From Paramoeba atlantica (taxonomy: Eukaryota > Protista > Discosea), in NCBI GenBank assembly GCA_977017575.1, contig CDRNVI010000093.1:1-64000 (forward strand): a DNA stretch of 64,000 nt, given 5' to 3'. The notes under the pieces are model-generated. The model made no database searches and had not been told where the DNA came from. It worked only from the letters and a program-made list of their open reading frames with translations. This document shows positions 1 through 15,400 of this stretch, piece by piece. Every line of letters starts with the position of its first letter. Position 1 is the stretch's first letter. The position numbers and the translations under genes were made by a program.

Positions 1-2
1 GA

Positions 3-751
3 GACGAAACAGCGATGTTCGTAAACGGGGAGGTGCAAGGATATACTCTTGTCTAAATTGGGAGTCCTCAACCAAAGGTTGTCGACACAAATCCGAAGGA
101 AACGGTGACTGCTTTTTTGGCCGCCATCTATGATTTCGGGTCTGACGAGGTATGTCCCCTTAACCCGACTGTAATTTTCGAGCATAACGCGAAGTCGCGG
201 GAAAATTCCACGATTTACAAGGAAATGGTGAAGCATGCCCAGAGGTCAAGGAGGACATTTATCCTCGCATGCTGAAGAGCTATTTACCCTTTTCACAGGA
301 AAGGTCTTCGACAGCAATAATCACAGATGATTGCTCAGGACATCGCACTGACGACATTCCTGAAAATTCCGACCCTCATACAATTCCTGGGGGTTGCACG
401 AAGGCAATACAAATTCATGACCGTGTATTTAATCGCTTGTTTAAGCGACAATACAATGAATTGCTCAGCGAATGGCGTCTTCACAACAACAAAGAAAAAG
501 TAAGCCGATATCTTGTCCTCGAATGGATAGAAGCACACACGCTAGTGTGGAAAACTCATCGCGAAGCAATACTAAAAGCCGCCCGCACATACATCAAGCG
601 ACCTGCCACCGAAAATCCTTGGGTAGAGCATCCAAATACACAGCCTCAATCTCAACTACATTCCCCGGAAGATCATGGAGCGTTGCTAAACTCCCATGAA
701 GACACATGTGAATCCAAGAGTACGTGTGAAACCAAGAAACCGGAACATATA
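3..751 (+). pseudogene. pogo/Tigger-like (DDE_1) transposase remnant, catalytic core and C-terminus; 5' part lies outside the window
   Basis: Frame 3 from nt 3 reads DETAMF... (one TAA) ...FILA, then shifts into ORF 269-757: LKSYL...TDDCSGH...IPGGCTKAIQIHD...FKRQYNELLSEW. This matches the pogo DET / DxxxxH / PxGCTxxLQPLD motifs, with DD30D spacing. Confidence 0.8.
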
Positions 752-2513
752 CAGTAACTCAAAAAAGTGTTCAAATGTTTCGACATTTTTTAATGTTTTT
801 ATTTTTTACCAAAGAGAATCAGAGGATAATGCTGTGGTATATGGTAGTAGTGTAGGCTGGGGTAGTGCTTATATCCCCACGTACTTTGAGTTCATCAACG
901 ATCTTACTACGAAAAACTATGAAAGATATAATGTCAGTCCAACATATGAACACTTTTTTGACTTTTTTTCGGACACGTTTTTTTTTAGGAAAACGTTCTA
1001 CTGCTTCACCCTTAATGGACCAAAATGGTTTAGACTTAATACTTAGTAAGTCCCCCCTTCGCCCTGATGACTGCCCTCAAACGACGGGGCATGCTTTGGA
1101 CAAGAGGGAGGCATGCACTTGGAGGAACTTTCGCCCATGCTTTTTGGGCCCGTTCCCATAACTCGATCATTCCTGCGGGTGGGTCGGGGTAATCTGCCGT
1201 TGCCTTTTTCAGTTCAACCCATAGGTTTTCTATGGGGTTTAAGTCGGGAGACTGAGGGGGCCAGTCAAGCACACACAGCTCCTGCGAATTTAAAAAATCC
1301 CGAGCCTTCTTACTCGTGTGCTTCGGATCGTTATCCTGTTGGAAGACGATCCGATCCTTCGTGACACTCAGCTTTTGTAGGGAAGGGGGCAAATTTCCCC
1401 GTCTGATGTCCGCCGTCTCATCACTAGCGGCGCCACAAAAGACGCAGTTGCCGCCAGCAAAAGGTTGAGAGACGAAGGTATTGCGGATGTTTGCCCGGAA
1501 ACCATTCGGGTTTCCCTTCGTAAGCGTGGTATGAAGGGAAAGAAGAGGGTCAAGAAGCCCTACCTTACGAAACGTCACAAGGCTCTACGTCTTGCTTTTG
1601 CAAGAAAGTACGAGCATTGGACGCACGCCGACTGGGGCCGTGTACTTTTCACGGATGAAACGAAGATCTGCCGTTTCGAGTCGAATGGTAGCCGGTGGGT
1701 TTGGGTAGACTTTGGGGAGGAACTGTCTGAGCGAAACACACAAGGTACGCTCAAGTATGGTGGTGGCTCCATCATGATATGGGGTTGCATGATGGAGCAC
1801 GGTGCGGGAACCATTGAGCTGGTTCACGGGAATATGAACGCCGAGCAGTACGTTCAAATACTGCAACAAAATTTGCCCCCTTCCCTACAAAAGCTGAGTG
1901 TCACGAAGGATCGGATCGTCTTCCAACAGGATAACGATTCGAAGCACACGAGTAAGAAGGCTCGGGATTTTTTAAATTCGCAGGAGCTGTGTGTGCTTGA
2001 CTGGCCCCCTCAGTCTCCCGACTTAAACCCCATAGAAAACCTATGGGTTGAACTGAAAAAGGCAACGGCAGATTACCCCGACCCACCCGCAGGAATGATC
2101 GAGTTATGGGAACGGGCCCAAAAAGCATGGGCGAAAGTTCCTCCAAGTGCATGCCTCCCTCTTGTCCAAAGCATGCCCCGTCGTTTGAGGGCAGTCATCA
2201 GGGCGAAGGGGGGACTTACTAAGTATTAAGTCTAAACCATTTTGGTCCATTAAGGGTGAAGCAGTAGAACGTTTTCCTATAAAAAAACGTGTCCGAAAAA
2301 AAGTCAAAAAAGTGTTCATATGTTGGACTGACATTATATCTTTCATAGTTTTTCGTAGTAAGATCGTTGATGAACTCAAAGTACGTGGGGATATAAGCAC
2401 TACCCCAGCCTACACTACTACCATATACTACAGCATTATCCTCTGATTCTCTTTGGTAAAAAATAAAAACATTAAAAAATGTCGAAACATTTGAACACTT
2501 TTTTGAGTTACTG
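752..2513 (+). mobile_element. Tc1-family DD34E element rearranged into a fold-back with 645-bp inverted arms (752-1396 / 1869-2513)
   Basis: Ends are CAGTAACTCAAAAAAGTG...CACTTTTTTGAGTTACTG, flanked by TA at 750-751 and 2514-2515. I saw only 3 substitutions between the arms. Confidence 0.95.
1399..2229 (+). pseudogene. Tc1 transposase lacking the N-terminal HTH (5'-truncated)
   Basis: FTDETK, WGC, QQDNDSKH and WPPQSPDLNPIENLW motifs (D-34-E). The frame is open from 1399 (PSDVRRL...) but starts at the inverted-arm junction and has no native start codon. Confidence 0.92.
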
Positions 2514-2515
2514 TA

Positions 2516-3250
2516 TGTGCCAGATTCTCCGAGCTCTATTGTAGACCTGGACACAGAGTGGCGAAAGTATCGGCGACCGAAATGTTGTCTTCCAACACAT
2601 GCTGTAGATCAAATATGCGAAAATGTCATGAGGACGTATCGCATGTTACCCGATGCCGACAAAAACATACTGTTTCTTGATACAGGCAAAACACGGCTCT
2701 TACTTGGTCAAGGTCGCCAGCCCAAGAAATACATTACATCAGTGCGCCGTGTGGTTTCTATTTTACTGTTTAATGGTTACTACGTCCTTGTAGATTATCA
2801 CCGTTGTGATATGACTGCTTACAATAGTTACCAAACGTATTCCCCTCATGCTCGTGGGGATTTCCTCAATAGTTTCGCTTCACACCTTCGGCAGATTGTA
2901 GGGACATCTGCAATCATAAAACGCATATAAAAATATTAATATTATAATATTATATTATAATATAACGCATTAAATATGCCTCCGTTCCACAGCAGTCACC
3001 CATGTCCAACGAATGTGCCCTCCACGTCATTAACAAATTATGTACTCTACAACACCACCTGGGACACCAACTGCGAGTTCAAGGGACCAGACACGTCTCC
3101 TCTCCGCTCAGGACCGAGTCGGCACAAGGAACAGCGCCTCCCCTATTCCAACCGAACCTAGTATTACAGCTCCGCCATGCGACTCAAGACCCCGACCACA
3201 AAGTAACACCGCAGATGAGTCGCAACACAGGAACACAGAGCAAGGATTGA
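2516..3250 (+). pseudogene. Degenerate Ulp1/C48-like cysteine protease domain
   Basis: CLPTHAVDQIC...SILLFNGYYVLVD...MTAYNSY joins KYASVPQQSPMSNECALHVINKL once the 2927-2970 insert is removed. The PQQ..xxC motif is present; the expected His and Asp positions read Tyr and Asn. Confidence 0.6.
2920..2970. other. 37-bp pure A/T insertion flanked by a 7-bp direct repeat (AACGCAT)
   Basis: AACGCAT occurs at 2920-2926 and 2964-2970. Deleting 44 bp restores the frame IIKRI-KYASVPQQ. Confidence 0.8.
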
Positions 3251-4044
3251 ACAACGGAGAGGAAACTAGGGGAACCCCCTCAACATCAGCACTCAGGCCT
3301 TCTCCAGCCCCACAGGAGGAACAGAGACTGGAAGGGCAGTCACGAACGAAAATTCGCAGGCCGCACCAAGGACGGGAGCATTTAGGTCCCAGCGTGTACC
3401 GGAAGGTGGTAGACACCAAAGCAGTGGGGAACAGCCAATGCTCCGCACCCAGAGGCCCACGCAAAACCCACGCCGCCCCCGAGCCCAGACAGAAACCCCA
3501 ACCTTGACCGAGCAGGAAGAAACAGCTGCTAGCCTCATGAGTAAGCTACGCACTATCGAAGGAGGTCGGGTTATGATCCACTTCACCACCGAACAATGGC
3601 ACCTTACCGAACAACGAGCGTTAGACCGGTGCCATAAGTTTATATGCCCCGCCCGGAACTCAGAGGAGGCCCTCGAACAGGCAAAGCTGCTGTCAGGCTG
3701 CATCGCAGTTACCGCCCATGAAGTAGCCTGCCACATTGACGCCGTTGGTGCATTTCGGATCCGGTCACACAGGGTTTCGGCAGGGCGCAAATCAAGGCCA
3801 ACCGCAGTCGAACGGTCTGCTGCAACCCTAGCAGGTCACGTCCGACAACTCAAGAGGTCCCTACGATATACACACGGTCGAGGCGCGCGAAACGAGCTGA
3901 AGGCGAAAATCAAAGAGGCAGGAAAACTGCATAAAACGTATCTAGAAGAGAGTTCACTACAGCGTCTCGAGATGGCGCAACGATAGGCCGCGACTCGATT
4001 CCAGAGAAACCCATGGACTGCCTCGGGGGAATGCCTGGACAACC

Positions 4045-5130
4045 ATGAAAAAGCAGCGGAGCAACGTAAGAAGCAAGGACCGGACTGCCCTATTGGAGAA
4101 ATCGAAAGATTTCTTTAAAAAAAATCTCGAAATCGAAAGCCACTTTAAGGAGTCGATGAGCAAGCCCCACACGGAGCATCACCTGCCCCCACGAGACTTC
4201 TTTGGACCAGCAACCGAGACAGAGATGCAATGGGAAGAAATCAATGGTGCCTCGATTGCCATAGCGGTATCCTCGAAACGTCCTTCAGCTGCTCCAGGAG
4301 CCGACACCATTAGTAACGCTATTCTGAAACGATGTGTCGCCCTACACCCCTTCTTGGCCCAAGTTTTCAACGGACTCCTGAAGTTTAGCGTCTGCCCCGA
4401 ATCATGGAAACAAGCTATAACACTTCTCATTCACAAAGGGGGTCCCTCGCGCGCGCTGGAAAACTGGAGGCCCATCGGTCTGACTAGCTTCCTGGGGAAG
4501 CTATTCCACTCTATCATAAGTCATCGGGTATTAGCCCACGTTACTTCTTCTGGTGTAATCGACACTACCATACAGAAAGGTTTCCTTCCGCGGGTGAACG
4601 GTACCGAACATACGCAGTCACTCTGCGAACTCCTGGAATTCCAACGCCGACACAAGCGACAATACTGTCTAGGGCAGTTTGGCTTGAAGAATGCTTTTGG
4701 CGCCCTTCCGCATAGCGTCCTATTCGACGCACTACAGTGGGCCCGAATCTCGCCCCGTATCGTGGCGTATATTCGTGCGTTGTACGACGGAGCACCTCTG
4801 CAAGTAAAATGCGCTGAAGGACTCACAAACCACATCCCAGTGCAGCGTGGCGTATTACAAGGAGACACGCTTTCACCGGTGCTGTTCCTGATTGCAATGG
4901 AGGTGGTCTTACGATTCCTTAGATCGAGTTTTCCAAAGTATGAAATCGTCTGGAATGATTCAGAAACCTTCCTGAAGGCCTTCGCGGATGATCTGACAAT
5001 GCTCACGAACACCCCTGAAGAAATGCAGAACGCGACGAATGTGCTTGTGAGGGTACTCTCAATGATGGGGGTGTCTAAACGTCAAGAAGTGCCGCCTTCA
5101 GCGTATGGCCGTAAAAGATGGGGGTTATAA
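4045..5130 (+). pseudogene. Reverse transcriptase domain of the non-LTR element
   Basis: Non-LTR RT motifs are present. The first catalytic Asp appears mutated (QFGLKNAFG versus the usual xDLKNAFG), and there is a frameshift near 5070. Confidence 0.92.
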
Positions 5131-5386
5131 GACGCACCGACCGAGGATCATGGCCTCTAGCGAACCAATACCTTATATATGTGACCGCGGCAGCACCTTC
5201 CTCGGTATGACTCTTGCACCTGGCGCGCAACAAGGAAAGGTTCTCTTCAAGACGCTACGGACAAAACTCCGCACATGGCTCCACAATATCACCCATAGCG
5301 CCTTCGATACCCCAGCCCGCCTCTGGATCTATAACCACGCTATCACATCTCGGCTACGTTATGCCTTTACCATCAACCCCGTACTC

Positions 5387-5552
5387 GTAAGATAAAACGT
5401 AAGATAAAAGTTATGAACAATTAAGAGTGCTTAATGAAAAAGTGGATAAAAAGAGGGAAGATTCACCTAAGAGGAAGGTGTCTTCACGAAAAACAAAATA
5501 GTAGTTTTATCAGCCGATGTAAATCGGCCTTTTTGGATTTGGATTGGATTGG
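5387..5552 (+). mobile_element. 166-bp 5'-truncated retroposon 3' end with a 12-bp TSD
   Basis: AACCCCGTACTC occurs at 5375-5386 and 5553-5564. The insert ends in a GCCGAT-GTAA-ATCGGC stem-loop and a (TTGGA)n-like tail. Removing it rejoins FTINPVL-SFSHVLRL in frame. Confidence 0.8.
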
Positions 5553-6081
5553 AACCCCGTACTCTCATTCAGCCACGTCTTAAGGCTCCAAAAGATGGCC
5601 ACCAACCATATTCGGAAATGGCTTAAAATGGCTAAAACCGCAACAAGTGAACTTATTTACTCGGAGAGTGGTTGGAATCTAACCAGCATGTCGAAGCTAT
5701 GGCTTCAGTGCACAGCCATAGCTCTAACACAAATGGAAAAATCCAGAGACCCAGCTGTACAGCACGCACTACGACAGCGCATCCAAAATGAACAAAAGAA
5801 GCGCTCGTCAGGCCAAATCAGGCCGCTTACCCAGCTATACGAGGTGCGCGACGACCCAGCAGCCCTTCAACGCACCATCAACACCCAACATGAGCGCCAC
5901 CTGCTAGAGGCCGTGCAGCGACGCACATCCGTGGCCTGCCAATGGTTCCAATTGGCCTCAGAAAGTGACCTGGCGAAGGATTTCGCATCTGCGCTATGCA
6001 ACATAAAGAGCGAGTCGTTGTCCCGCTTCACAGCTTCAGTTCTCACACAGACGCCTCTTCCTACCCGCGCAGCACTACATA

Positions 6082-7638
6082 CAGGGGTGAAAACCTCGTG
6101 GTGGGGGGGTCTAAAATTCGTAAAAATTATCCAATTTTGGAAAGTAATAGCGCATTCGAGAGCTCTCACAGAGTTGTATGTTTTAGCACTATTTGCGGCC
6201 TGTGACTCAACATGAAACGATGAGACAAAAAAAATCATGATTTTTTTTCTTGCCCAAATTTACGTTTTTTCAGTTTTTAGCTGTTTTTCAGTCAATATTA
6301 GCACTATATGCCCCAGAAACGGATTCGTTCCCGAACCTCACGTGGTGTACTCAGCGACAGGTCCTATTCCTCCCCCGCACGGGTGATACCAAGTCACCGT
6401 ATGCTTCTTGTCTCAGATTATCTTGAGACAGGGTCCTATTCTCGGACAGCCCAAAACTTCGGCGTCCACGAAAATACAGTAAAACGTCTTGTGATACGCT
6501 ATGAGAACACTGGAGACGTGGAAAGCTCTCCTATTTCACGCCCATCTCCTGTCAGTACCCCTGCGCTGCACGAAGCAGCTATCCGCCTCATTGATGAGGG
6601 ATACCGTGACCTCCCGTACGGGATTGAGAACTGGTGTGCACTCCATAGAGTTGTGCTTTCTCTTGGATTTCAGTGTTCAAGACCAACTTTGGTTAACGCC
6701 ATGAAGAGCCATGGTATGATCATGCGAACTTTAAAAAGAAAGCCCGCACTGACCGATGAACACAAGAGGAAACGAGTGCATTTTTGTTCTGAGATGCTCA
6801 CTTGGTCAGATACCCAACTGAGACAAATTGTTTTCTGCGATGAGAAGAAGTTTACTTGCGGTAGGGGACGAAACAAAATTACTTACCTTTGCCGGAAGAC
6901 TGACCCCGCCAAGGAACAGCAGGGAGAGCTAGAACCTTGGTATGGAGGGAACGGCGTCATGGTGTGGATGGGGGTCAGTTTAAATCATGGATTTCATCTA
7001 CACATTTTTCCCTCCCACGACCCTTCCGGCCTAAAAGTAACTGTAACAGGGGATGTTTTCAATGACGCCATGAAGAAGCGCAAAGGACTTTTAAATTATT
7101 TGAGGCGCCACCCATCTGGGGTCGTTGCAATGGATAATTGTCCTGTTCATAATTCTGCGCGAACAACCTTTCGCAACGAAGGTATTAATGTACTCTCTTG
7201 GCCTGCAAAATCCCCCGATTTAAACACCATTGAAAACCTTTGGGGGACCATGGACAGGATCAAAAATGATCTTCGACCCAAGAATCGGGCTGAATTAGTA
7301 TCGGCAATTGAGACAGCGTTCGAAAGATTACAATCAGAACGCAAGCAAGAATGTATTAACACGATGAGCAGTTTCCGCAAGCGTTGTCGCATCGTTATTG
7401 GGCGAAACGGGTCTTCCTGTGGGTATTAAGGGTAATTTTTGACCATTTTTTACAGTTTTTCAAATTTGCAAATCGTGTTTTTGACCCTTCCATCAAAGGG
7501 GGGTACCCCCCTAACCCCCGCAAACTGCCTATCTTAAAACATACAACTCTGCGAGAGCTCTCGAACGCTCTATTATTTTCCAAAATTGGACAAATTTTAC
7601 GAATTTTAGATCCCCCCACCATGGTATTTTCACCCCTG
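6082..7638 (+). mobile_element. Tc1/IS630-like DNA transposon, 1557 bp, with ~105-bp imperfect TIRs and TA TSD
   Basis: CAGGGGTGAAAA...TTTTCACCCCTG, with TA at 6080-6081 and 7639-7640. Excision restores ALH-R-WGLN in the host retroelement. Confidence 0.95.
6308..7429 (+). CDS. Tc1-like transposase, apparently intact, 373 aa, DD32E
   Basis: N-terminal HTH (SYSRTAQNFGVHENTVKRLV), FCDEKKF, VWMGVS, MDNCPVH and WPAKSPDLNTIENLW. Confidence 0.92.
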   Translation: MPQKRIRSRTSRGVLSDRSYSSPARVIPSHRMLLVSDYLETGSYSRTAQNFGVHENTVKRLVIRYENTGDVESSPISRPSPVSTPALHEAAIRLIDEGYRDLPYGIENWCALHRVVLSLGFQCSRPTLVNAMKSHGMIMRTLKRKPALTDEHKRKRVHFCSEMLTWSDTQLRQIVFCDEKKFTCGRGRNKITYLCRKTDPAKEQQGELEPWYGGNGVMVWMGVSLNHGFHLHIFPSHDPSGLKVTVTGDVFNDAMKKRKGLLNYLRRHPSGVVAMDNCPVHNSARTTFRNEGINVLSWPAKSPDLNTIENLWGTMDRIKNDLRPKNRAELVSAIETAFERLQSERKQECINTMSSFRKRCRIVIGRNGSSCGY

Positions 7639-7837
7639 TAGATGGGGCCTAAACACACATGTAAACACGAAGTGTCCCATTTGCAATGAGGAAGTCCAAA
7701 CTATCCGCCACATATTTGCTGGCTGTCGAGTCTCCCTGGAACAAGGAAGATACACCTATCGCCACAATTTGGTGCTCGAGACGCTAGCTGATGCTATATC
7801 CAGCTGCCCGACGACGGCGCAAACCCATTTCGACCTA

Positions 7838-8346
7838 AGGTATAAAGGACAAGGGAGATACTAAGAGCACATCGAAAAGAAAATTTCTAAAACGAAAAAG
7901 ATTTTCATTGAAAATTTTCAAAAGATTGAAGAAAAAATATTAATGAAAAATATCAAAAAGGAAAAATTCGAGAAAGAAAAAGTATCTCCCATTTTTCTTC
8001 TCGGTGACCATTCAAGATGAAATGGGAGAAAAATATCAAAAAGGAAAAATTCGAGAAAGAAAAAGTATCTCCCATTTTTCTTCTCGGTGACCATTCAAGA
8101 TGAAATGGGAGAAAAATATCAAAAAGGAAAAATTCGAGAAAGAAAAAGTATCTCCCATTTTTCTTCTCGGTGACCATTCAAGATGAAATGGGAGATACTT
8201 TTTCTTTCTCGAATCTTTCCTTTTTGATATTTTTCATTAAATTTAATATTTTTTTCTTCAAACTTTTTAAATTTTTCAATGAAAATCGTTTTCGTTTTAG
8301 AAATTTTTTTTTCGATGTGCTCTTAGTATCTCCGTCCTTTATACCT
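7838..8346. mobile_element. Non-autonomous fold-back element with ~155-bp imperfect inverted arms
   Basis: AGGTATAAAGGAC...GTCCTTTATACCT termini. The arms (about 7838-7992 and 8187-8346) align. No TSD was found. Confidence 0.7.
7945..8193. repeat. Three tandem copies of an 83-bp unit
   Basis: The unit GAAAAATATC...GAAATGGGA starts at 7945, 8028 and 8111. Confidence 0.95.
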
Positions 8347-8399
8347 GGGTTATGGTGCTGTCTTTGGATCTTTGTTAAAAAAAAATTCCGGAATTTTTT

Positions 8400-8600
8400 T
8401 TGTCGGGCCAAATTTCGGGTCAAATTTCGGGCGAGATTTTGGACGAAATTTCGGGCCAAATTTCGAGTCGTCCAAAAGGTGCGTTTTTCTTTTCTAAAAC
8501 TATCTATTTGTGGTGCTGCATTTCGTTCTTTTCGAAAAAAACTTTTTCAGGAAAAATGTTTGTCGGGCCAAATTTCGGGCGAAATTTCGGGCCAAATTTT
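8400..8600. repeat. Two clusters of degenerate 12-bp tandem repeats (AAATTTCGGGCC)
   Basis: About 5 copies at 8400-8468 and about 3 at 8562-8600. Confidence 0.8.
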
Positions 8601-8944
8601 ATTATTACTGGGTAGCGAGGGAGTAGTATCTCCCTCAATAATCGTACTTAACTAGACAATTAACTCTTTCACATTGTATCATCTTTCATAATGTTTTTCT
8701 TTTAATTGCTTTGCTACTTAAATGCCTACATGTCAGTCACCCAACCCAGACATCCCCCCTGTCCGCCCTTCACTCCTCAACATCCCATCACCGCATTATT
8801 CTCCAGGGGGCTTCTTTTTCTTCTGTTCCAGAGATTCCTTTTGTTCGCCTTTCTCGAGAAAGACGGGCGCCGCGAAGCGACGCGATTTTTTTTTTAATTG
8901 TATTTTGTCGGGTAAGAAATAGCGTCATTTTCTGCGCCATGAGC

Positions 8945-9004
8945 ACCCCCCCTTTAATATGGACAAAGTCCAAAAATCTGTCCGTATTAAAGGGGGGGTC
9001 ACAG
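8945..9004. mobile_element. Orphan right end of a TA-flanked MITE family related to the 44425 element
   Basis: ...TTAAAGGGGGGGTCACAG followed by TA, with an internal inverted copy CCCCCCCTTTAATATGGACA / TGTCCGTATTAAAGGGGGGG. Confidence 0.55.
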
Positions 9005-9255
9005 TACCTTTTTCTTTCAATTATCTTCCTTTATTTATCTCCTTTTCGATCAGTTATCTTACAAATACATTTTTATGTGTGCCTGATAACTTGAGCGCTC
9101 TGTTACTTGGGCGCTACACTTGTAGTTCTTTTGTCCCATTCCAAAGGTATGACCCCACCCCTATATTGTCCCTTAAATACCCGTCCCGTAATAACACCAC
9201 GCACTGTACCTCAATTATAAGTTTTTTATAAGTTTTTTTATCCTACCCGAACCCA

Positions 9256-9452
9256 TTAGCGCACGCCCCTTCGGTACCTATTTTGTACCGCGGCATGCGC
9301 TATCTGGGCGTTCCCCTTCTGAATGGCTACCCCGATTGCCATGATAAAGTGGCTGAGGCACCCATTCTTTTCCTCGATGGTCTTCCGAGCTACCAGATCT
9401 AGAAACTGGAGAGTCTCGGGGCCAGGGACTCCGTAAGTGGTGAAGGCCAGCG
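9256..9452 (-). mobile_element. 3' fragment of a CRE/SLACS-like RLE retrotransposon
   Basis: Translates as LAFTTYGVPGPETLQFLDLVARK...IMAIGVAIQKGNAQIAHAAVQNRYRRGVR*. It is followed by a tail containing ATAAAAAACTT twice. Confidence 0.8.
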
Positions 9453-9634
9453 AGCACCTAAAATCTAGACACTAGAAAATAGAAATCAATAAACTTTTGG
9501 GTACAATATATGTTTACATTGCCCACATATTTTTTCGCAGTGGGGCACTTCCCGAATAAGTCGAAAAATCACGTTTCATGTCTGAACGACAACATTTTTG
9601 AATCACACGAGGGGTTGAGAGTGAAGCCCAAGAC

Positions 9635-9806
9635 GAGATCACTTGAGATCACGCGAGATCATGCGAGATCACGCGAGATCATGCGAGATCACGCGAAATC
9701 ATGCGAGATCACGTGAGATCACGCGAGATCTCTCGAGAGCGGATTTGGTTCGGGAGGGTGGTTGGACGATCTCAAAACGAGATCACGTGAGATCACGCCA
9801 GATCAT
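9635..9806. repeat. Decamer tandem repeat GAGATCA(C/T)GC
   Basis: 10 units at 9635-9734 and about 3 more at 9779-9806. The C/T alternation gives a partial 20-bp period. Confidence 0.95.
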
Positions 9807-10042
9807 ACCCGCAGCCCCTCACATACATGTACAGATGTAATACCTGGAAAAACAGGGGAAACGGGGGTGTAAGTATGGTTCTTCGTAGTTTTCGAGAAAA
9901 AGAGGTTTGAAAACGTCGGGATAATACAGAACTGAAAATCGTGAACGGGAAAGTTTTACCTTAAATTACATGGGTCATCGGTGCGAAAGATATCCGCGCC
10001 TTATTCATATCAAGGGGTGCATATGTAAACCAATCATTGTGG

Positions 10043-11200
10043 TCACTTTTTCCTAAAAAAAGAAGTTATGCTCTTTATGCCATGGAGATGGGTGGGTTGA
10101 TTCAAACCTCGTTGTGACTTCGTCCATTTCTTTTCACCTAAATTTTGGTATGTTGTAGGTTTTGATGCTGGTCGCTCAAAATGACTGTTGATCATGACCT
10201 GACCGGGGCTCACACTAGTATTTGCATTGTTGGTGTTCGCAACTTTATATTTTTCTCTAATCCATGAAGTACACAGTGGCGCATCAGTAAGGTATTCCTC
10301 ACATAGAATCGATACACAGGACGCCGCGTAAGTATCACGCAAGGAAAATCTTAAAGAGTCTGCAAATTCAGTCAATAATACAATCCTTTCAACTTTGGAT
10401 GAGATCCATTTCAGCGTTTTTTCCTTGCTCAAAGCGTATCCAGTCTCTAGTGGGTCTAAAGGTGATTTCTTCGTATCGCACAAAAGGTTAAGCAACCCGT
10501 AACATCCCGTATTACCAAGCTCTGTATCTATTATGGACCGGAAAATATTAATTGATTTACCCGTTTTGCTTCCAAAATGACAATTCAAGTCATCAAAATT
10601 GTGTAATATCTCATATTTGAGCTCTTGAAATTCGCGAAACGTCTGTGTAAAAGAGAATGATGATTCGGTGCAATCTCGTCTTTCCACAGAACACGTTGCT
10701 GTTTCAAGGTATGAAAGCATCATCCAGGTAACATCGAAGGGGGTAATATTATAATACTTTCCCTTTTTTAGCAAAGTACAGGAAGTTTGTGAGTTTTTGT
10801 TATTTGAGTCGCATTCCATCTCGCACCCCCACGAGGAATGCGGGGACTTAATAAAGTAGTCTGATGTTTCCCTCACTTCGACTATTTCTACTTCCGTGGA
10901 CTGACATGGAGGGTGAAAGTTTAGGATTCCATACAGTCGATCATTCTTACGCATATTTATTGCCTTAGTAGAGTTTTTTACCCTGAAACACTCTAGATGC
11001 AAAGCACCACTTTCAGGCTGGCTTCTTTTAAAACCTGACAAAACGTGACTCGGATCAAGCAGTATATGGTATCTCCCCTCCGTACGAGCATAAAGAGATA
11101 ATAGGGCAACGTCTTCCGTTGTCGAATGATTGTCATTCACGTCTCGAGTCGTCTTATCGGCGTGGGATGTGTCTACAATTATTTGCTTTCTGGATATCAT
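10043..11200 (-). CDS. RNASEH2B: Ribonuclease H2 subunit B
   Basis: KYYNITPFDVTWMMLSYL, SKEKTLKWISSKV, YAASCVSILCEEYL and a C-terminal PIP-box-like GIKSITSFF. Confidence 0.75.
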   Translation of the reverse strand: MISRKQIIVDTSHADKTTRDVNDNHSTTEDVALLSLYARTEGRYHILLDPSHVLSGFKRSQPESGALHLECFRVKNSTKAINMRKNDRLYGILNFHPPCQSTEVEIVEVRETSDYFIKSPHSSWGCEMECDSNNKNSQTSCTLLKKGKYYNITPFDVTWMMLSYLETATCSVERRDCTESSFSFTQTFREFQELKYEILHNFDDLNCHFGSKTGKSINIFRSIIDTELGNTGCYGLLNLLCDTKKSPLDPLETGYALSKEKTLKWISSKVERIVLLTEFADSLRFSLRDTYAASCVSILCEEYLTDAPLCTSWIREKYKVANTNNANTSVSPGQVMINSHFERPASKPTTYQNLGEKKWTKSQRGLNQPTHLHGIKSITSFFRKK

Positions 11201-11743
11201 TTATGAACGTTAGCCTGATGTTAACCTTTTAGAAACTATACCGGTGTTAGAAACTGTCTACTGTGAAACTTATGCAATGAATCCAAAATTTAATGTCGTT
11301 AATATTCGTGGGACAAAAATTAATGTTTTTTATTAAGCATGGTCGTTATTTCGGTTTCCCGGAGTAAAATGTTTTTTTTGTCATTTTTTGAACCCTCTGT
11401 TATCATCCAAGCTCACTTTATCACTGCCAACGGCATTGAACTTGGTAGAAACCTGCAGTCGACTGCGAAAAACTTAGAATCGTTAAAATAAAAACTTAAA
11501 TCGTGAAGACCGCGAGTGCTTTTTCCAGAATACTCGAGGCGAGTGTAAAAACGCTCTCGTATAGGGTCGATCATGCGTTTTTGGAACGGTTCTCCAGTCT
11601 GCTATGAGATAGATTTTTTGGAAATTAACAGCGGATTCGTGAAGATCTGTGGAAGAGCTCAACCGAAAAAAAATATGTTTTTGTAATCCACCGTAGAGCT
11701 ATCAATAGCATAGGAAAAGAGTTACAAAATCCGCAAAGCCCAG

Positions 11744-11836
11744 CTAGCGCACGCCGCTACGGTACCAATTTTGTACCAATTTTGCGGCGTGCGCTATCTG
11801 AGCGTTCCCCTTCTGTATGGCTACTCCCAAAGCCAT
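11744..11836 (-). mobile_element. Very short 3' tail of the same CRE-like family
   Basis: IMALGVAIQKGNAQIAHAA...YRSGVR*, closely similar at nucleotide level to 9256-9345. Confidence 0.75.
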
Positions 11837-11889
11837 GATTTTGTAATCTTTTCCAAATAACGTTTTCCACGGCGACTCGTGGGATTCGC

Positions 11890-12274
11890 GGTGGAATTGA
11901 ACGAAGTTAGCACTTTTTTTCAAAAACAATAAAAACGATCTTTCTTATTATTATTTTTTGTTTCTGTTGCTTGCAAAATATATAGTTTTGAATCTTTGCT
12001 AGTATCTTTGACCTTTTTACGTTCTCAGGTACGGGTGAAATCATGGTCAATCACTTTGATGGTGGGTTTTGTTGTGGGTGTCTTGAAATGAACTGTGTCA
12101 CACGTCTTCCGTTTAGTGAGGTTAAGCCCGCTGGTACGAGTTTTGTTGGATGTGGCATTGTTTTGTGCGGAAATCGTATTGTCTGCATCATTTTGATTTT
12201 CTTTGGAATTCGTTGATATTTAATCACTTTTAGAATTTGTTTTGCAAAGTGTGCAAACTTCGTTCAATCTGACC
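11890..12274. mobile_element. MITE with ~29-bp TIRs and an 8-bp TSD (Merlin-like), copy 1
   Basis: GGTGGAATTGAACGAAGT...ACTTCGTTCAATCTGACC, with TSD GGATTCGC at 11882-11889 and 12275-12282. Confidence 0.9.
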
Positions 12275-12454
12275 GGATTCGCTCTGTATAAAGCCAGAAC
12301 TCCACAATAGGATATAGCATATCCCCAACCCGTCAGCCGCAATCCGAACCCTTTGAAATACCTTTTTATAAATACTTTTTTACATGCAGAGTGAAAAACA
12401 TAATGCTTTTTACGAGACATTAATATCGAAGCCATCACAAAGAATTAGTCTTCT

Positions 12455-15400
12455 TTATGCATCCGTGTGTTCTATTTCAAGTTCTATTTTATCTTTTTCA
12501 ACCCTATCCAAATCGAACATATCACGCGCATCCTCAGGTATTAACAGATCCGTAGAGTGAGGTGATCCGTCCCTCAGGTAGACAATGCTAACAAACTCCC
12601 CAGGAACGGCGTGTCTTCCAAGAGCCGAAAAAAAGGCTTGCAAAGTTTTCTTGTGTCGCAAGGATGAGCCGCCAAAGTACACGAGAACATCATCTGAATG
12701 TAATCCGGCGTCCGATGCGGCTCCGTCGGGTTGTACACTCTCAACCACAATACCTGTAGGGTGAGGAACCTCAGCGAGCTTCAGGCCTAGATCAATATTA
12801 ACGGAAGCAATATCCAGACTGGACAGAGTCGCGCTGAGAAGGGACGCTTCGGAATAGGAAGGAGAAACCGAGTCAAGCCGTGAGAAGTGAGAATCTTTAG
12901 AAACGTACTCCACGGAAGAACGAGAATCGCTTTCTCTTGGGTAAAGTTGATCAAATGGATGTAGTTTATGTCTTGGACATGTTCTTCCCGCACTATTCTT
13001 TTTGTTGCTACATGCAGTGAAACAATGCGCCGCAAGACCCAGGATTAGTATATAATTTCGTACTAGAATCTGTTTGCGGTTTTGAATTTGCTTATACATC
13101 TCTGAAGAGGCAGCAGAAAAATTGTCCCCTACTGCGCTATCGCACGAAAGAATTATCTGCACAATCGCTAACAGAAAACGCTTCCACAGCTTTTGAGAAT
13201 TTTTAATTTTAAATAGTGCACCACTGGAAGCATTCCATGCACAAGGATCGGTTTTAGAATATAACGCTTCGGATTGCACGCTTCTTATGAGCAACCGTTC
13301 CAAATTAGAAGAACCACGAAGGAAAAGCATAGCAGCATTTTTACTGGCGTGAGCATGCGACATTCCAATCATTTCCAGGCACTCCATGCAATTCATACAC
13401 TTGGCCTTCAGTGTGTGGATTAAGATGTAAAATTCTTCCGTTTCCTGCTCGCAGTGTGGCTCCGAATAATGTGTGATCGTTCTTTCATGTATTTGCTGCA
13501 ATTCGTTCTTATAATGATCGCGCAAATTTTCTATTTGAACACATTGAAACTGCATTCTTCGTACTTCGGAGGACGCATCACTCGTCTCTGATTCAAGCTC
13601 AAACGTGGGAACCGGTTTCGGCGAAGCTTCCTTGTTCAACAATTCTGAATCTGCGCTGTAGCTTTTCAGACGTCCTATTCGAGAGACATGAGAATGGTGC
13701 TTTAGGCGCGTCCAATGAAATCGTTGTTGTATCACAGAATTTTTATGGCACAGCCACAAAGCGAGTCTCCTGCTTCGTTCACTTGTTCGACAAGAGCCAA
13801 GCACGTCCTTCCATCGAGCAAAAGCGTTTCTAAGAAGGTACTGACGGTATGGCAAAGAAGGATTGGGAGTATATCCTTTACAAGTTTTTTTTTGATTTAT
13901 CAGATGATCCCATTTGGTCCAAGCGTGTATTAAAACTCGTGACGAAACAGTAGTGCGAACCTGTTCAGAACACGCTATTAATATTTCTTTTTCTGTGCTG
14001 CTTTTCAAGAACAACGCCCACGTGCGCCAATAGACAGCACGCTTCGCGAGCATAATTTGATTAAAGAATTTTTTTTGTAAATCACACATACACTGCTGAT
14101 GTAGCCGCCGTAAAATTGTTTGTTCAAAGCGGGTCACAGTATTGTGGCGACACCGGTGAAATTCGAAGGTCAAGGCCTTCGGAAGACTGTGCATTGTTAG
14201 TCGTCTGGTTCTTTCTTCATAGGGATACGAGTGCCAGCAAGAAAAATGTGAAAAGATGTTCCGCAACAGACCTATTCTCATTTGTTTTACGAGATGTACG
14301 CCGCAAGTAAAGTGGTCAGCACTTTTTTTTCTCCACTTCAGGAGTGCATTTCTTATTATTCGATGATCTTTTAGATTGGACACCCTTAACAATGCCAGCG
14401 CTCTTAACTTTGTGAACTCTTTTCGTAAGGCGTTTATTCGACACCATGACACCTTGCGAAGTTCATTGCAGGCTGATATTTTCCTGCTCAGTATGTACTG
14501 CTCGCCGATATGGACGCCTTGTCTGCCACTATTAATACCCTTTGCGTTAAGCTTTGCAAGATAGGAGATAACTACGCGACCAGCATCACAAATTTGTACT
14601 ACGTACAAAATTCGTTCATAGCTCACATGCTGTATGAGACACACTGCACTTCCCGTATGCTCGCTTAGATATCCCAACGGCCGATGCGTGTCCACGTCAT
14701 AAATATGTATCTTGCCATTTCCGTACCCGCACCAAAGGTGTCTTGATAGTTGGTCATAGTACAAACTAAGGCAAACAGAATTCTCTCCACGAAACCTCTT
14801 TGCAGGACGTCTCATCTGTATATCCCACATCAATAAAACGCCTGAACGGTCACCACTGTAGAGTGTGTCATCCACGAGAGTAAGCACTGTCACTTCTGCC
14901 CGGTGTCCACAGAGGCTGAAAATGGGACTCTGTGGGCTTTTGGGCCAATGAACGTCCCATACATGAATTAAACCATCTGAATCCGCTGAGTAAATCCAGT
15001 TGCGGCTCGAAACTAGACATTGCACAGGGTAATGATGGGCACACATTCTACCAAATGCTAGGATTCTCAGGGAAGCGGCGTTCCACTGTAGAATTCCAAA
15101 GTCGCAACTGGAAGAGTAAACAAAATTCTGTGCAGCCGTAAAACTCGTGACGGCGGATGTGTGTGGTTTGCACTCTAATACAATTTGTAGCATTTGCACA
15201 TTTAATACTATCACATGACCATCGCTCAAGCCCAACCACAAATGTGGAGCGTAGTAAAGCATTGCGAAAACAAACGCCTTTGAATTTCGTTCGAACGAAA
15301 AGACCGATGCTCCGTCGTGAGGGGCACGAACGGTCAACGCTCCGCTCTGATCACCAGTCCAAATCGAGGTATGTGGCGGATCACTGACGGTGAAATCTTC

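Follow-up and report, generated by a model that had tools for sequence, protein, structure and literature searches.

Pogo and Tigger transposons (DDE_1, within the IS630-Tc1-mariner group) duplicate a TA target, end in short terminal inverted repeats (TIRs) and encode in a single open reading frame (ORF) a transposase with a catalytic aspartate triad (DDD) of 30-residue spacing. Ulp1-type protease domains have been reported from other mobile elements: in Ginger1 and Mutator-like elements (KI-MULE) Ulp1's C-terminal catalytic domain is fused to a DDE transposase or accompanies it (PMC2836005), and the retroelements NeSL and Utopia-1_TSP possess an N-terminal Ulp1-like protease (PMC4640811). Our literature search found no paper that joins Ulp1 with pogo or Tigger. 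Here we analyze the first 64 kb (the window) of contig CDRNVI010000093.1 of Paramoeba atlantica, contig C93 in an assembly of 45.7 Mb and 248 contigs (GCA_977017575.1). An earlier reading made from the letters of this stretch (the sequence-only reading) had reported a pogo-type transposase, a Ulp1-like domain, a reverse transcriptase (RT) and a CCHC zinc knuckle in this order on the plus strand of 3-7837, and had interpreted them as one chimera of DNA transposon and retrotransposon or as one element inserted in another. We find that window 1-9006 is very probably a pogo-type DNA transposon of the TA-targeting, TIR-bounded kind, no longer functional and interrupted by a foreign block with a truncated, unrelated fragment of a retrotransposon without long terminal repeats (non-LTR). 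The whole locus is an ordinary pile-up of mobile DNA and contains no hybrid element.

The transposon family shares the TA duplication, the short TIRs, the single ORF and the DDD spacing with pogo and Tigger, and its homologs match Pfam DDE_1 and in some cases HTH_Tnp_Tc5. It differs from them in a Ulp1/C48 domain at the C-terminus of the transposase and in a divergence that leaves the 743-residue protein of an intact copy without any Pfam match. Ginger1 and KI-MULE have Gypsy-integrase-like or MuDR transposases and other target duplications, whereas the transposase described here is of DDE_1/pogo type and uses TA. Full-length relatives of the RT fragment resemble elements of the NeSL, Utopia and R2 type in their N-terminal zinc fingers, RT, CCHC knuckle and PD...E...K motif, with R2 as the best match in the PDB. 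Unlike NeSL and Utopia, this RT family has no Ulp1 domain, and neither the endonuclease nor the N-terminal part is present in the window copy. The insertions within insertions, each with its own target duplication, are likewise found in ordinary nested clusters of transposable elements, from which the window does not differ in any essential respect.

Structure of the interrupted transposon

The transposon copy in the window has two close paralogs, C52:78153-79720 and one on contig C8, which are 90-96% identical to it and collinear with window 544-751 and 2516-3050. Beyond the equivalent of position 3050 both paralogs continue with the C-terminal tail of the transposase, a stop codon and the 3' untranslated region (UTR), and their similarity to the window (93%) returns at about 8638-9009, TIR and TA included. 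Since C52 and C8 run on past 3050 and match again only from about 8638, the window sequence in between, 3051 to about 8637, does not belong to the transposon. At the breakpoint the window reads ...TGTACTCTAC up to 3050 and AACACCACCT... from 3051 onwards, where C52 reads ...TGTGCTCTAC followed by TTTTTTTAGG.... The transposon sequence ends here 17 codons past the catalytic-Cys motif of the Ulp1 domain. On the far side of the block, the right TIR at 8979-9004 matches that of an intact family member (L006, on contig C4) and is followed by TA at 9005-9006.

Window 3051-3990 was found solely in the window and in a nearly identical stretch of contig C53, while the matches of C52 and C8 end at 3050. 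C53:81021-93237 (minus strand) is 99.6-100% identical to window 1-14000 without the stretch 751-2515 and appears to be an allele or a very recent duplicate of the locus. It reaches upstream of the window's contig start and extends the transposase to about residue 173. Three runs, all belonging to one study that is probably the source of the assembly, yielded Logan contigs (2463, 2654 and 132 nt) that span 3050/3051. Because these independent contigs from three runs cross it, we regard the join as real DNA. One loose contig end (X4) at 3050 runs on as C52-type sequence.

In tblastn, the transposase segment of the window is 65-74% identical to the ORF of L006. It retains all three aspartates of the triad (3-5, ~326-331 and 419-421) and contains two frameshifts (~191-263 and ~646-690). 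In the Ulp1 domain the catalytic His is replaced by Tyr (in NGYYVLV, 2772-2792) and the catalytic Asp by Asn (in AYNSY, 2817-2831), and this copy of the protease is therefore expected to be inactive; the C52 paralog retains both residues. The RT fragment carries an in-frame TAG at 3984 and frameshifts at ~4115-4132 and ~5075-5094. The locus is accordingly predicted to be non-functional, with a frameshifted and interrupted transposase whose left end is missing or displaced, a protease without two of its catalytic residues and a truncated and broken RT. A single candidate RNA run gave no coverage of the stretch, which by itself does not prove silence. The locus does not move as a unit, nor does it encode a DDE-Ulp1-RT protein, and the dead copy adds nothing to the intact copies elsewhere in the genome.

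Several details of the sequence-only reading can now be placed. The order of DDE, Ulp1-like, RT and zinc-knuckle segments on the plus strand was borne out, as were four inserts whose removal rejoins the interrupted frames: stop-to-stop translation of the plus strand reproduces the reported peptide joins, and the proteins of relatives align without a break across all four insert sites. What had been taken for a frameshift near 3040 is the junction of two elements at 3050/3051, and the frameshift assigned to about 3990 resolves into the TAG and the first of the RT frameshifts given above. The span of 3-7837 given there ends where the RT copy ends, without the endonuclease, and is too short for the transposon, which runs on to its TIR.

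The pogo-Ulp1 family

More distant copies of the first 620 bp of the window exist at several loci at 66% identity, among them L006. This element has a single ORF of 743 residues, made up of an N-terminal region, the DDD core, the Ulp1 domain and a stretch of some 80 residues beyond it. The 3' UTR that follows is about 560 bp long, and TIRs of about 27 bp (CTGTGACCCCCCCCTTTAATATGGACA), themselves flanked by TA, mark both ends of the element. The DDE and Ulp1 parts are thus one gene of one transposon, and no TIR is visible between them because both belong to a single ORF. A six-frame search of the genome with the Ulp1 part returned 80 matches, including open frames of 747 and 773 residues with 48-50% identity.

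The identity of the transposase domain becomes clear from its homologs. The DDE_1 match of the window itself is weak (Pfam E=0.032, short of the cut-off), and phmmer with the 743-residue ORF found no match in the PDB. A word-based homolog search gave just two close matches; an exhaustive HMMER search found 67 relatives, and 23 of them were aligned. DDE_1 is matched by 18 of the 23 aligned homologs (best 2.4e-17), and P0002, at 73% identity, reaches 29.8 bits where the cut-off is 22. A feature search of the ESM Atlas led with a top score of 0.96 to DDE_1 clusters and also agreed with the Ulp1 assignment. Across the 23 homologs, D245, D366 and D397 of the L006 ORF vary little or not at all, with 30 residues between the last two (DD30D). 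As to the N-terminal CENP-B/psq-type HTH DNA-binding domain of the pogo superfamily, residues 1-150 of L006 match no Pfam family, and only a few homologs match HTH_Tnp_Tc5, HTH_Tnp_1 or BrkDBD.

Pfam searches with the window pieces and the intact ORF gave no Peptidase_C48. A profile built from 13 Ulp1-part sequences of the family matched yeast Ulp1 (1euv) at 6.2e-5, followed by SENP5, SENP1, Ulp2 and SENP8, and the alignment to 1euv brings His, Asp, Gln and Cys into register (motifs NGHFILV, FDSY and VPQQ...NECG in L006). Two homologs, P0158 (23.0 bits) and P0168 (31.6 bits), pass the Pfam cut-off for Peptidase_C48. An AlphaFold model of the domain based on the 13-sequence alignment reached a pLDDT of 89.8 and a pTM of 0.88, and the top 50 PDB matches of this model in Foldseek are exclusively Ulp/SENP/NEDP1 or other CE-clan proteases (probability 1.00, TM ~0.6). 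Structure prediction of the C-terminal part from a single sequence gave a pLDDT of 37. P0158 (715 residues) passes both Pfam cut-offs, with 49.6 bits for DDE_1 in addition to its Peptidase_C48 score, and is encoded by an element of 2.6 kb that has 35-bp TIRs and lies between two TA dinucleotides (L052:28-2629 and L053:1-2602, Logan SRR16362373 and SRR16347384). P0126 (784 residues) aligns with the pogo-Ulp1 protein from end to end.

The retrotransposon fragment and its relatives

The RT part of the foreign block matches Pfam RVT_1 (7.1e-21 on window 3946-5127) and zf-RVT (1.3e-4 on 7640-7861), with the FADD motif at 4981-4992 and the CCHC knuckle at 7673-7726. According to tblastn and blastx it corresponds to residues ~450-1358 of a 1490-residue relative and lacks the N-terminal 30% and the endonuclease; a restriction-like endonuclease (RLE) was sought throughout the window and none was found. 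The DNA of 3990-5386 and 5565-6081 has a high-identity match only in the allele, and about 35 relatives are 65-71% identical. The full-length relatives L042 (C3) and L045 (C1) are 4.9-kb units with common 5' and 3' ends and differing flanks. In their 1490-residue ORF, four CxHxCx5CxHxCCK fingers precede a Pro/Ser/Thr-rich linker and the RT; a CCHC knuckle (CPxC...H....C) comes next and, following it, an RPD...ELT...K motif, which we read as a restriction-like endonuclease from the motif alone. The N-terminal 760 residues (L042:2357-4630), where the four finger motifs stand in tandem with Pro-rich spacers, contain no Pfam match for any of them.

In Pfam, the 1490-residue ORF matches RVT_1 and zf-RVT only and no protease, and it has no significant similarity to the transposase or its Ulp1 part (best blastp E 0.023). 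Its best PDB matches are R2 proteins (1e-29), followed by LINE-1 ORF2p (1e-28). In a large protein database, a Caenorhabditis relative of the RT carries Peptidase_C48 (PF02902), and a Caenorhabditis NeSL-like protein is among the named matches. Judged by these similarities, the RT family appears to sit among protease-prone RLE elements while having no Ulp1 domain itself. Distant relatives of the RT from metagenomes (P0028, P0034, P0043, P0048, P0067 and P0075) carry an N-terminal ubiquitin C-terminal hydrolase (UCH) domain, PF00443. They have it where NeSL has its Ulp1 domain, which suggests that RLE-type non-LTR elements have recruited proteases for ubiquitin-like modifiers of a second kind.

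Full-length RT copies all start with AGATACAGTTTCTGTACCTTGTTG, with ...ATAA before it (L042:2045-2068, L045:1962-1985, L044:3086-3109 and L043:1896-1919). This 24-mer has 810 dispersed occurrences in the genome versus 0 for a reversed control, and it is absent from the window. We take the motif to resemble the 3' part of the kinetoplastid spliced leader. The RNAs of these retroelements may undergo trans-splicing ahead of reverse transcription; alternatively, leader-like sites may serve the elements as targets.

Origin of the locus

To what the observations above show (where the parts begin and end, how they are nested, which domains they hold and that the junction is unique) we add an order of events that we infer. 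A non-LTR fragment would have landed in the pogo-Ulp1 transposon in the same orientation by retrotransposition, its 5' truncation being usual for target-primed reverse transcription, and a later event would have removed its endonuclease end. The RT fragment would then have received a short retroposon fragment and a Tc1-like element, and the transposon a polymorphic Tc1-like fold-back element and a 44-bp insert. Some observations weigh against this history. The RT element has left neither a target-site duplication nor a poly(A) or 3' tail. From the window copy of the transposon, about 490 bp of C-terminal tail and 3' UTR (C52:78851-79340) are absent, and because these and the 3' end of the RT element are lost, at least one deletion or rearrangement must have occurred with or after the insertion. 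No homology to either element was detected in 3051-3344; this stretch is probably a fast-evolving linker of the RT element's ORF, and its composition resembles that of the linker in the relatives. Finally, the left TIR of the transposon copy was sought in the C53 allele and not found, the sole find of this search being the oppositely oriented end of another element (C53:98670-98831).

The missing 490 bp, the RT without its 3' end, the lack of a target duplication and the fold-back and short repeats that occupy 7841-8637 would also fit a variant in which the nesting is as described and the RT fragment was brought by deletion or ectopic recombination between neighbouring insertions. We consider this route unlikely, with a modest chance of being correct: a 5' truncation within the ORF is what target-primed reverse transcription usually leaves, and the two transposon flanks stem from a single copy and are correctly ordered and oriented. 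An error of the assembly, namely a mis-join of repeats at the contig start, would be in keeping with a repeat-dense region and with a window that begins at a contig end inside the transposon. However, the same join is present in C53, which differs by the Tc1 insert and a 2-bp TG, and the Logan contigs from three runs of one study span it as well, so that an artefact is hardly credible.

A true chimeric element, in which pogo transposase, Ulp1 domain, RT and zinc knuckle move or moved as a unit, was the more far-reaching proposal of the sequence-only reading, and the parts do share one strand and a single order with no TIR or tail between them within 3-7837. Yet the junction exists at one locus and its allele only, the transposon's right TIR and 3' UTR are found beyond the RT block, in intact relatives the Ulp1 domain comes last and a TIR closes the element, full-length RT relatives possess ends of their own and neither DDE nor Ulp1, and the RT in the window is truncated at both ends. 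The continuity of C52 and C8 together with the single-locus junction refutes the chimera, to which we assign next to no probability; the shared strand of the two parts is a 1-in-2 coincidence. It had been argued beforehand that pogo copies ending in a TIR before the Ulp1 region, retroelement 5' ends without DDE and a junction confined to this locus would speak against a chimera. The pogo copies turned out to end in a TIR after the Ulp1 domain; the RT 5' ends do lack DDE, and the junction is unique to the locus and its allele. The fallback of one element inserted in another in the same orientation was right, with the seam between Ulp1 and RT at 3050/3051. It was also correct that no TIR, target-site duplication or tail separates pogo from Ulp1, which form a single ORF, and the seam had been sought there, in the wrong place.

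Alternatively, the Ulp1 domain could belong to a NeSL- or Utopia-like Ulp1-RT-RLE retroelement that landed beside or inside a plain pogo element. The earlier statement that Ulp1 domains occur in NeSL-type elements and in some DNA transposons is right (PMC4640811, PMC2836005), and among the relatives of the RT the Caenorhabditis protein has PF02902 and others have a UCH domain. But DDE and Ulp1 lie in one uninterrupted ORF in L006, P0126 and P0158, the C52 and C8 copies consist of Ulp1 domain, tail and TIR without an RT, and the full-length RT relatives begin with four zinc fingers and have neither a Pfam protease nor significant similarity to the Ulp1 part. A NeSL-like unit at this locus is thus highly improbable, and the arrangement is best described as a pogo-Ulp1 transposon with an RT fragment inside it.

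Implications

A true hybrid of DNA transposon and retrotransposon would be remarkable, and the finding of nesting removes a false lead. The locus teaches that collinear domains on the same strand without visible termini between them can come from a 5'-truncated retroelement inside the ORF of a transposon. L010:1-3382 presents the mirror image of the window, with an internally deleted pogo-Ulp1 element lying on the same strand within the RT ORF of a different retroelement. As this locus shows the reverse nesting, collinear arrays arise readily in this genome.

The fusion of a pogo-type transposase with Ulp1 is the mildly novel part of our findings and a variant of the known theme of Ulp1-carrying transposons. 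A pogo-type element with a Ulp1/SENP-like domain adds a superfamily to the DNA transposons that recruit proteases for ubiquitin-like modifiers, of which Mutator and Ginger1 are known. We lean towards the view that the DDE_1 transposase with a catalytically intact Ulp1/C48 domain represents an undescribed, still-coding lineage, with at least three open frames (743, 747 and 773 residues) and the 2.6-kb TA-flanked TIR element in an unrelated public sample, and that its protease acts in transposition, for example by stripping the transposase itself, or host factors of repair or chromatin, of small ubiquitin-like modifier (SUMO) or a related modifier. If they behave like other pogo elements, intact copies of the family would excise and integrate at TA by means of the DDD core, and the Ulp1 domain could remove a SUMO-like modifier from host or element proteins during transposition. 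A similar role has been proposed for the Ulp1 of Mutator and Ginger1 (PMC2836005). The recurrent recruitment of such proteases suggests a functional link between transposition and SUMO/ubiquitin-type signalling.

Nested inserts and neighbouring repeats

Table 1. Parts of the interrupted transposon and of the block inside it, in window coordinates.
Feature	Position	Strand	Remarks
Pogo-type transposase segment	1-751	+	residues 245-474 of the 743-residue relative; cut by the contig start
Insert 1, Tc1-like fold-back element nested in the transposase	752-2512	.	CAG...CTG ends; TA at 750-751 and 2513-2514; polymorphic
Linker and Ulp1-like (C48) domain, first part	2515-2926	+	from comparison with relatives
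Insert 2, 44 bp, AT-rich	2927-2970	.	between two copies of the 7-bp direct repeat AACGCAT
Ulp1-like domain, last part	2971-3050	+	Gln and Cys motifs kept: VPQQSP 2984-3001, NECALH 3008-3025
Pro/Ser/Thr-rich stretch	3051-3344	+	only here and at the allele
Non-LTR retrotransposon fragment (pre-RT, RT, thumb, CCHC knuckle)	3345-7837	+	interrupted at 5387-5564 and 6082-7638
Insert 3, 166-bp retroposon-type fragment	5387-5552, second copy of the target duplication to 5564	+	GGATT-repeat tail; repeat family
Insert 4, Tc1-like element nested in the RT fragment	6082-7638	+	TA at 6080-6081 and 7639-7640
Fold-back	7841-8343	.	503 bp; 84-nt inverted arms (94% complementary); three exact 83-bp tandem units
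Dispersed short repeat, one partial and one complete copy	8350-8637	+	~170 bp; 12-bp AAATTTCGGGCC units
Transposon 3' UTR and right TIR	8638-9004	+	93% identity to C52:79349-79722

Inserts 1 and 4 (Table 1) both match Pfam DDE_3 (1.7e-16 and 5.7e-9, respectively) and HTH_Tnp_Tc3_2, and insert 1 encodes a Tc1-type transposase. Insert 1 is missing from the near-identical allele at C53:92486-92488, where the frame is unbroken (RNRNI-C-VPDS). Compared with the window flanks (750-751 / 2513-2516) minus one TA, this empty allele has one TG unit (2 bp) more, either as a microsatellite-type difference between haplotypes or as a slight alteration that came with the insertion. Insert 2 is missing from the paralogs on C52 and C8. 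Insert 3 is framed by a 12-bp target duplication, AACCCCGTACTC, at 5375-5386 and 5553-5564, and other genomic copies of its family are 93-97% identical.

The remainder of the block, between the RT fragment and the returning transposon, consists of repeats. The fold-back was found only at this locus and its allele. The ~170-bp repeat has more than 35 genomic copies at 74-92% identity, ends in ...GTATCTCCCTCAAT and stops exactly at 8637, where the transposon homology resumes; it may be an element resembling a short interspersed element (SINE) or a miniature inverted-repeat transposable element (MITE). A comparison of 7838-8640 with the 3' ends of the RT relatives yielded short-repeat matches only.

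Upstream of the allele on C53, a PIF/Harbinger-like DDE_Tnp_4 fragment (E 3.5e-4) lies at L023:7879-8559 (minus strand). About 600 bp from it, at L023:9146-9538 (minus strand), is a divergent Ulp1-like ORF that has 34% identity to the pogo-linked domain and keeps the H, D, Q and C residues. Ulp1-like domains may thus travel with other element types in this genome, or this ORF may be another pogo-Ulp1 remnant.

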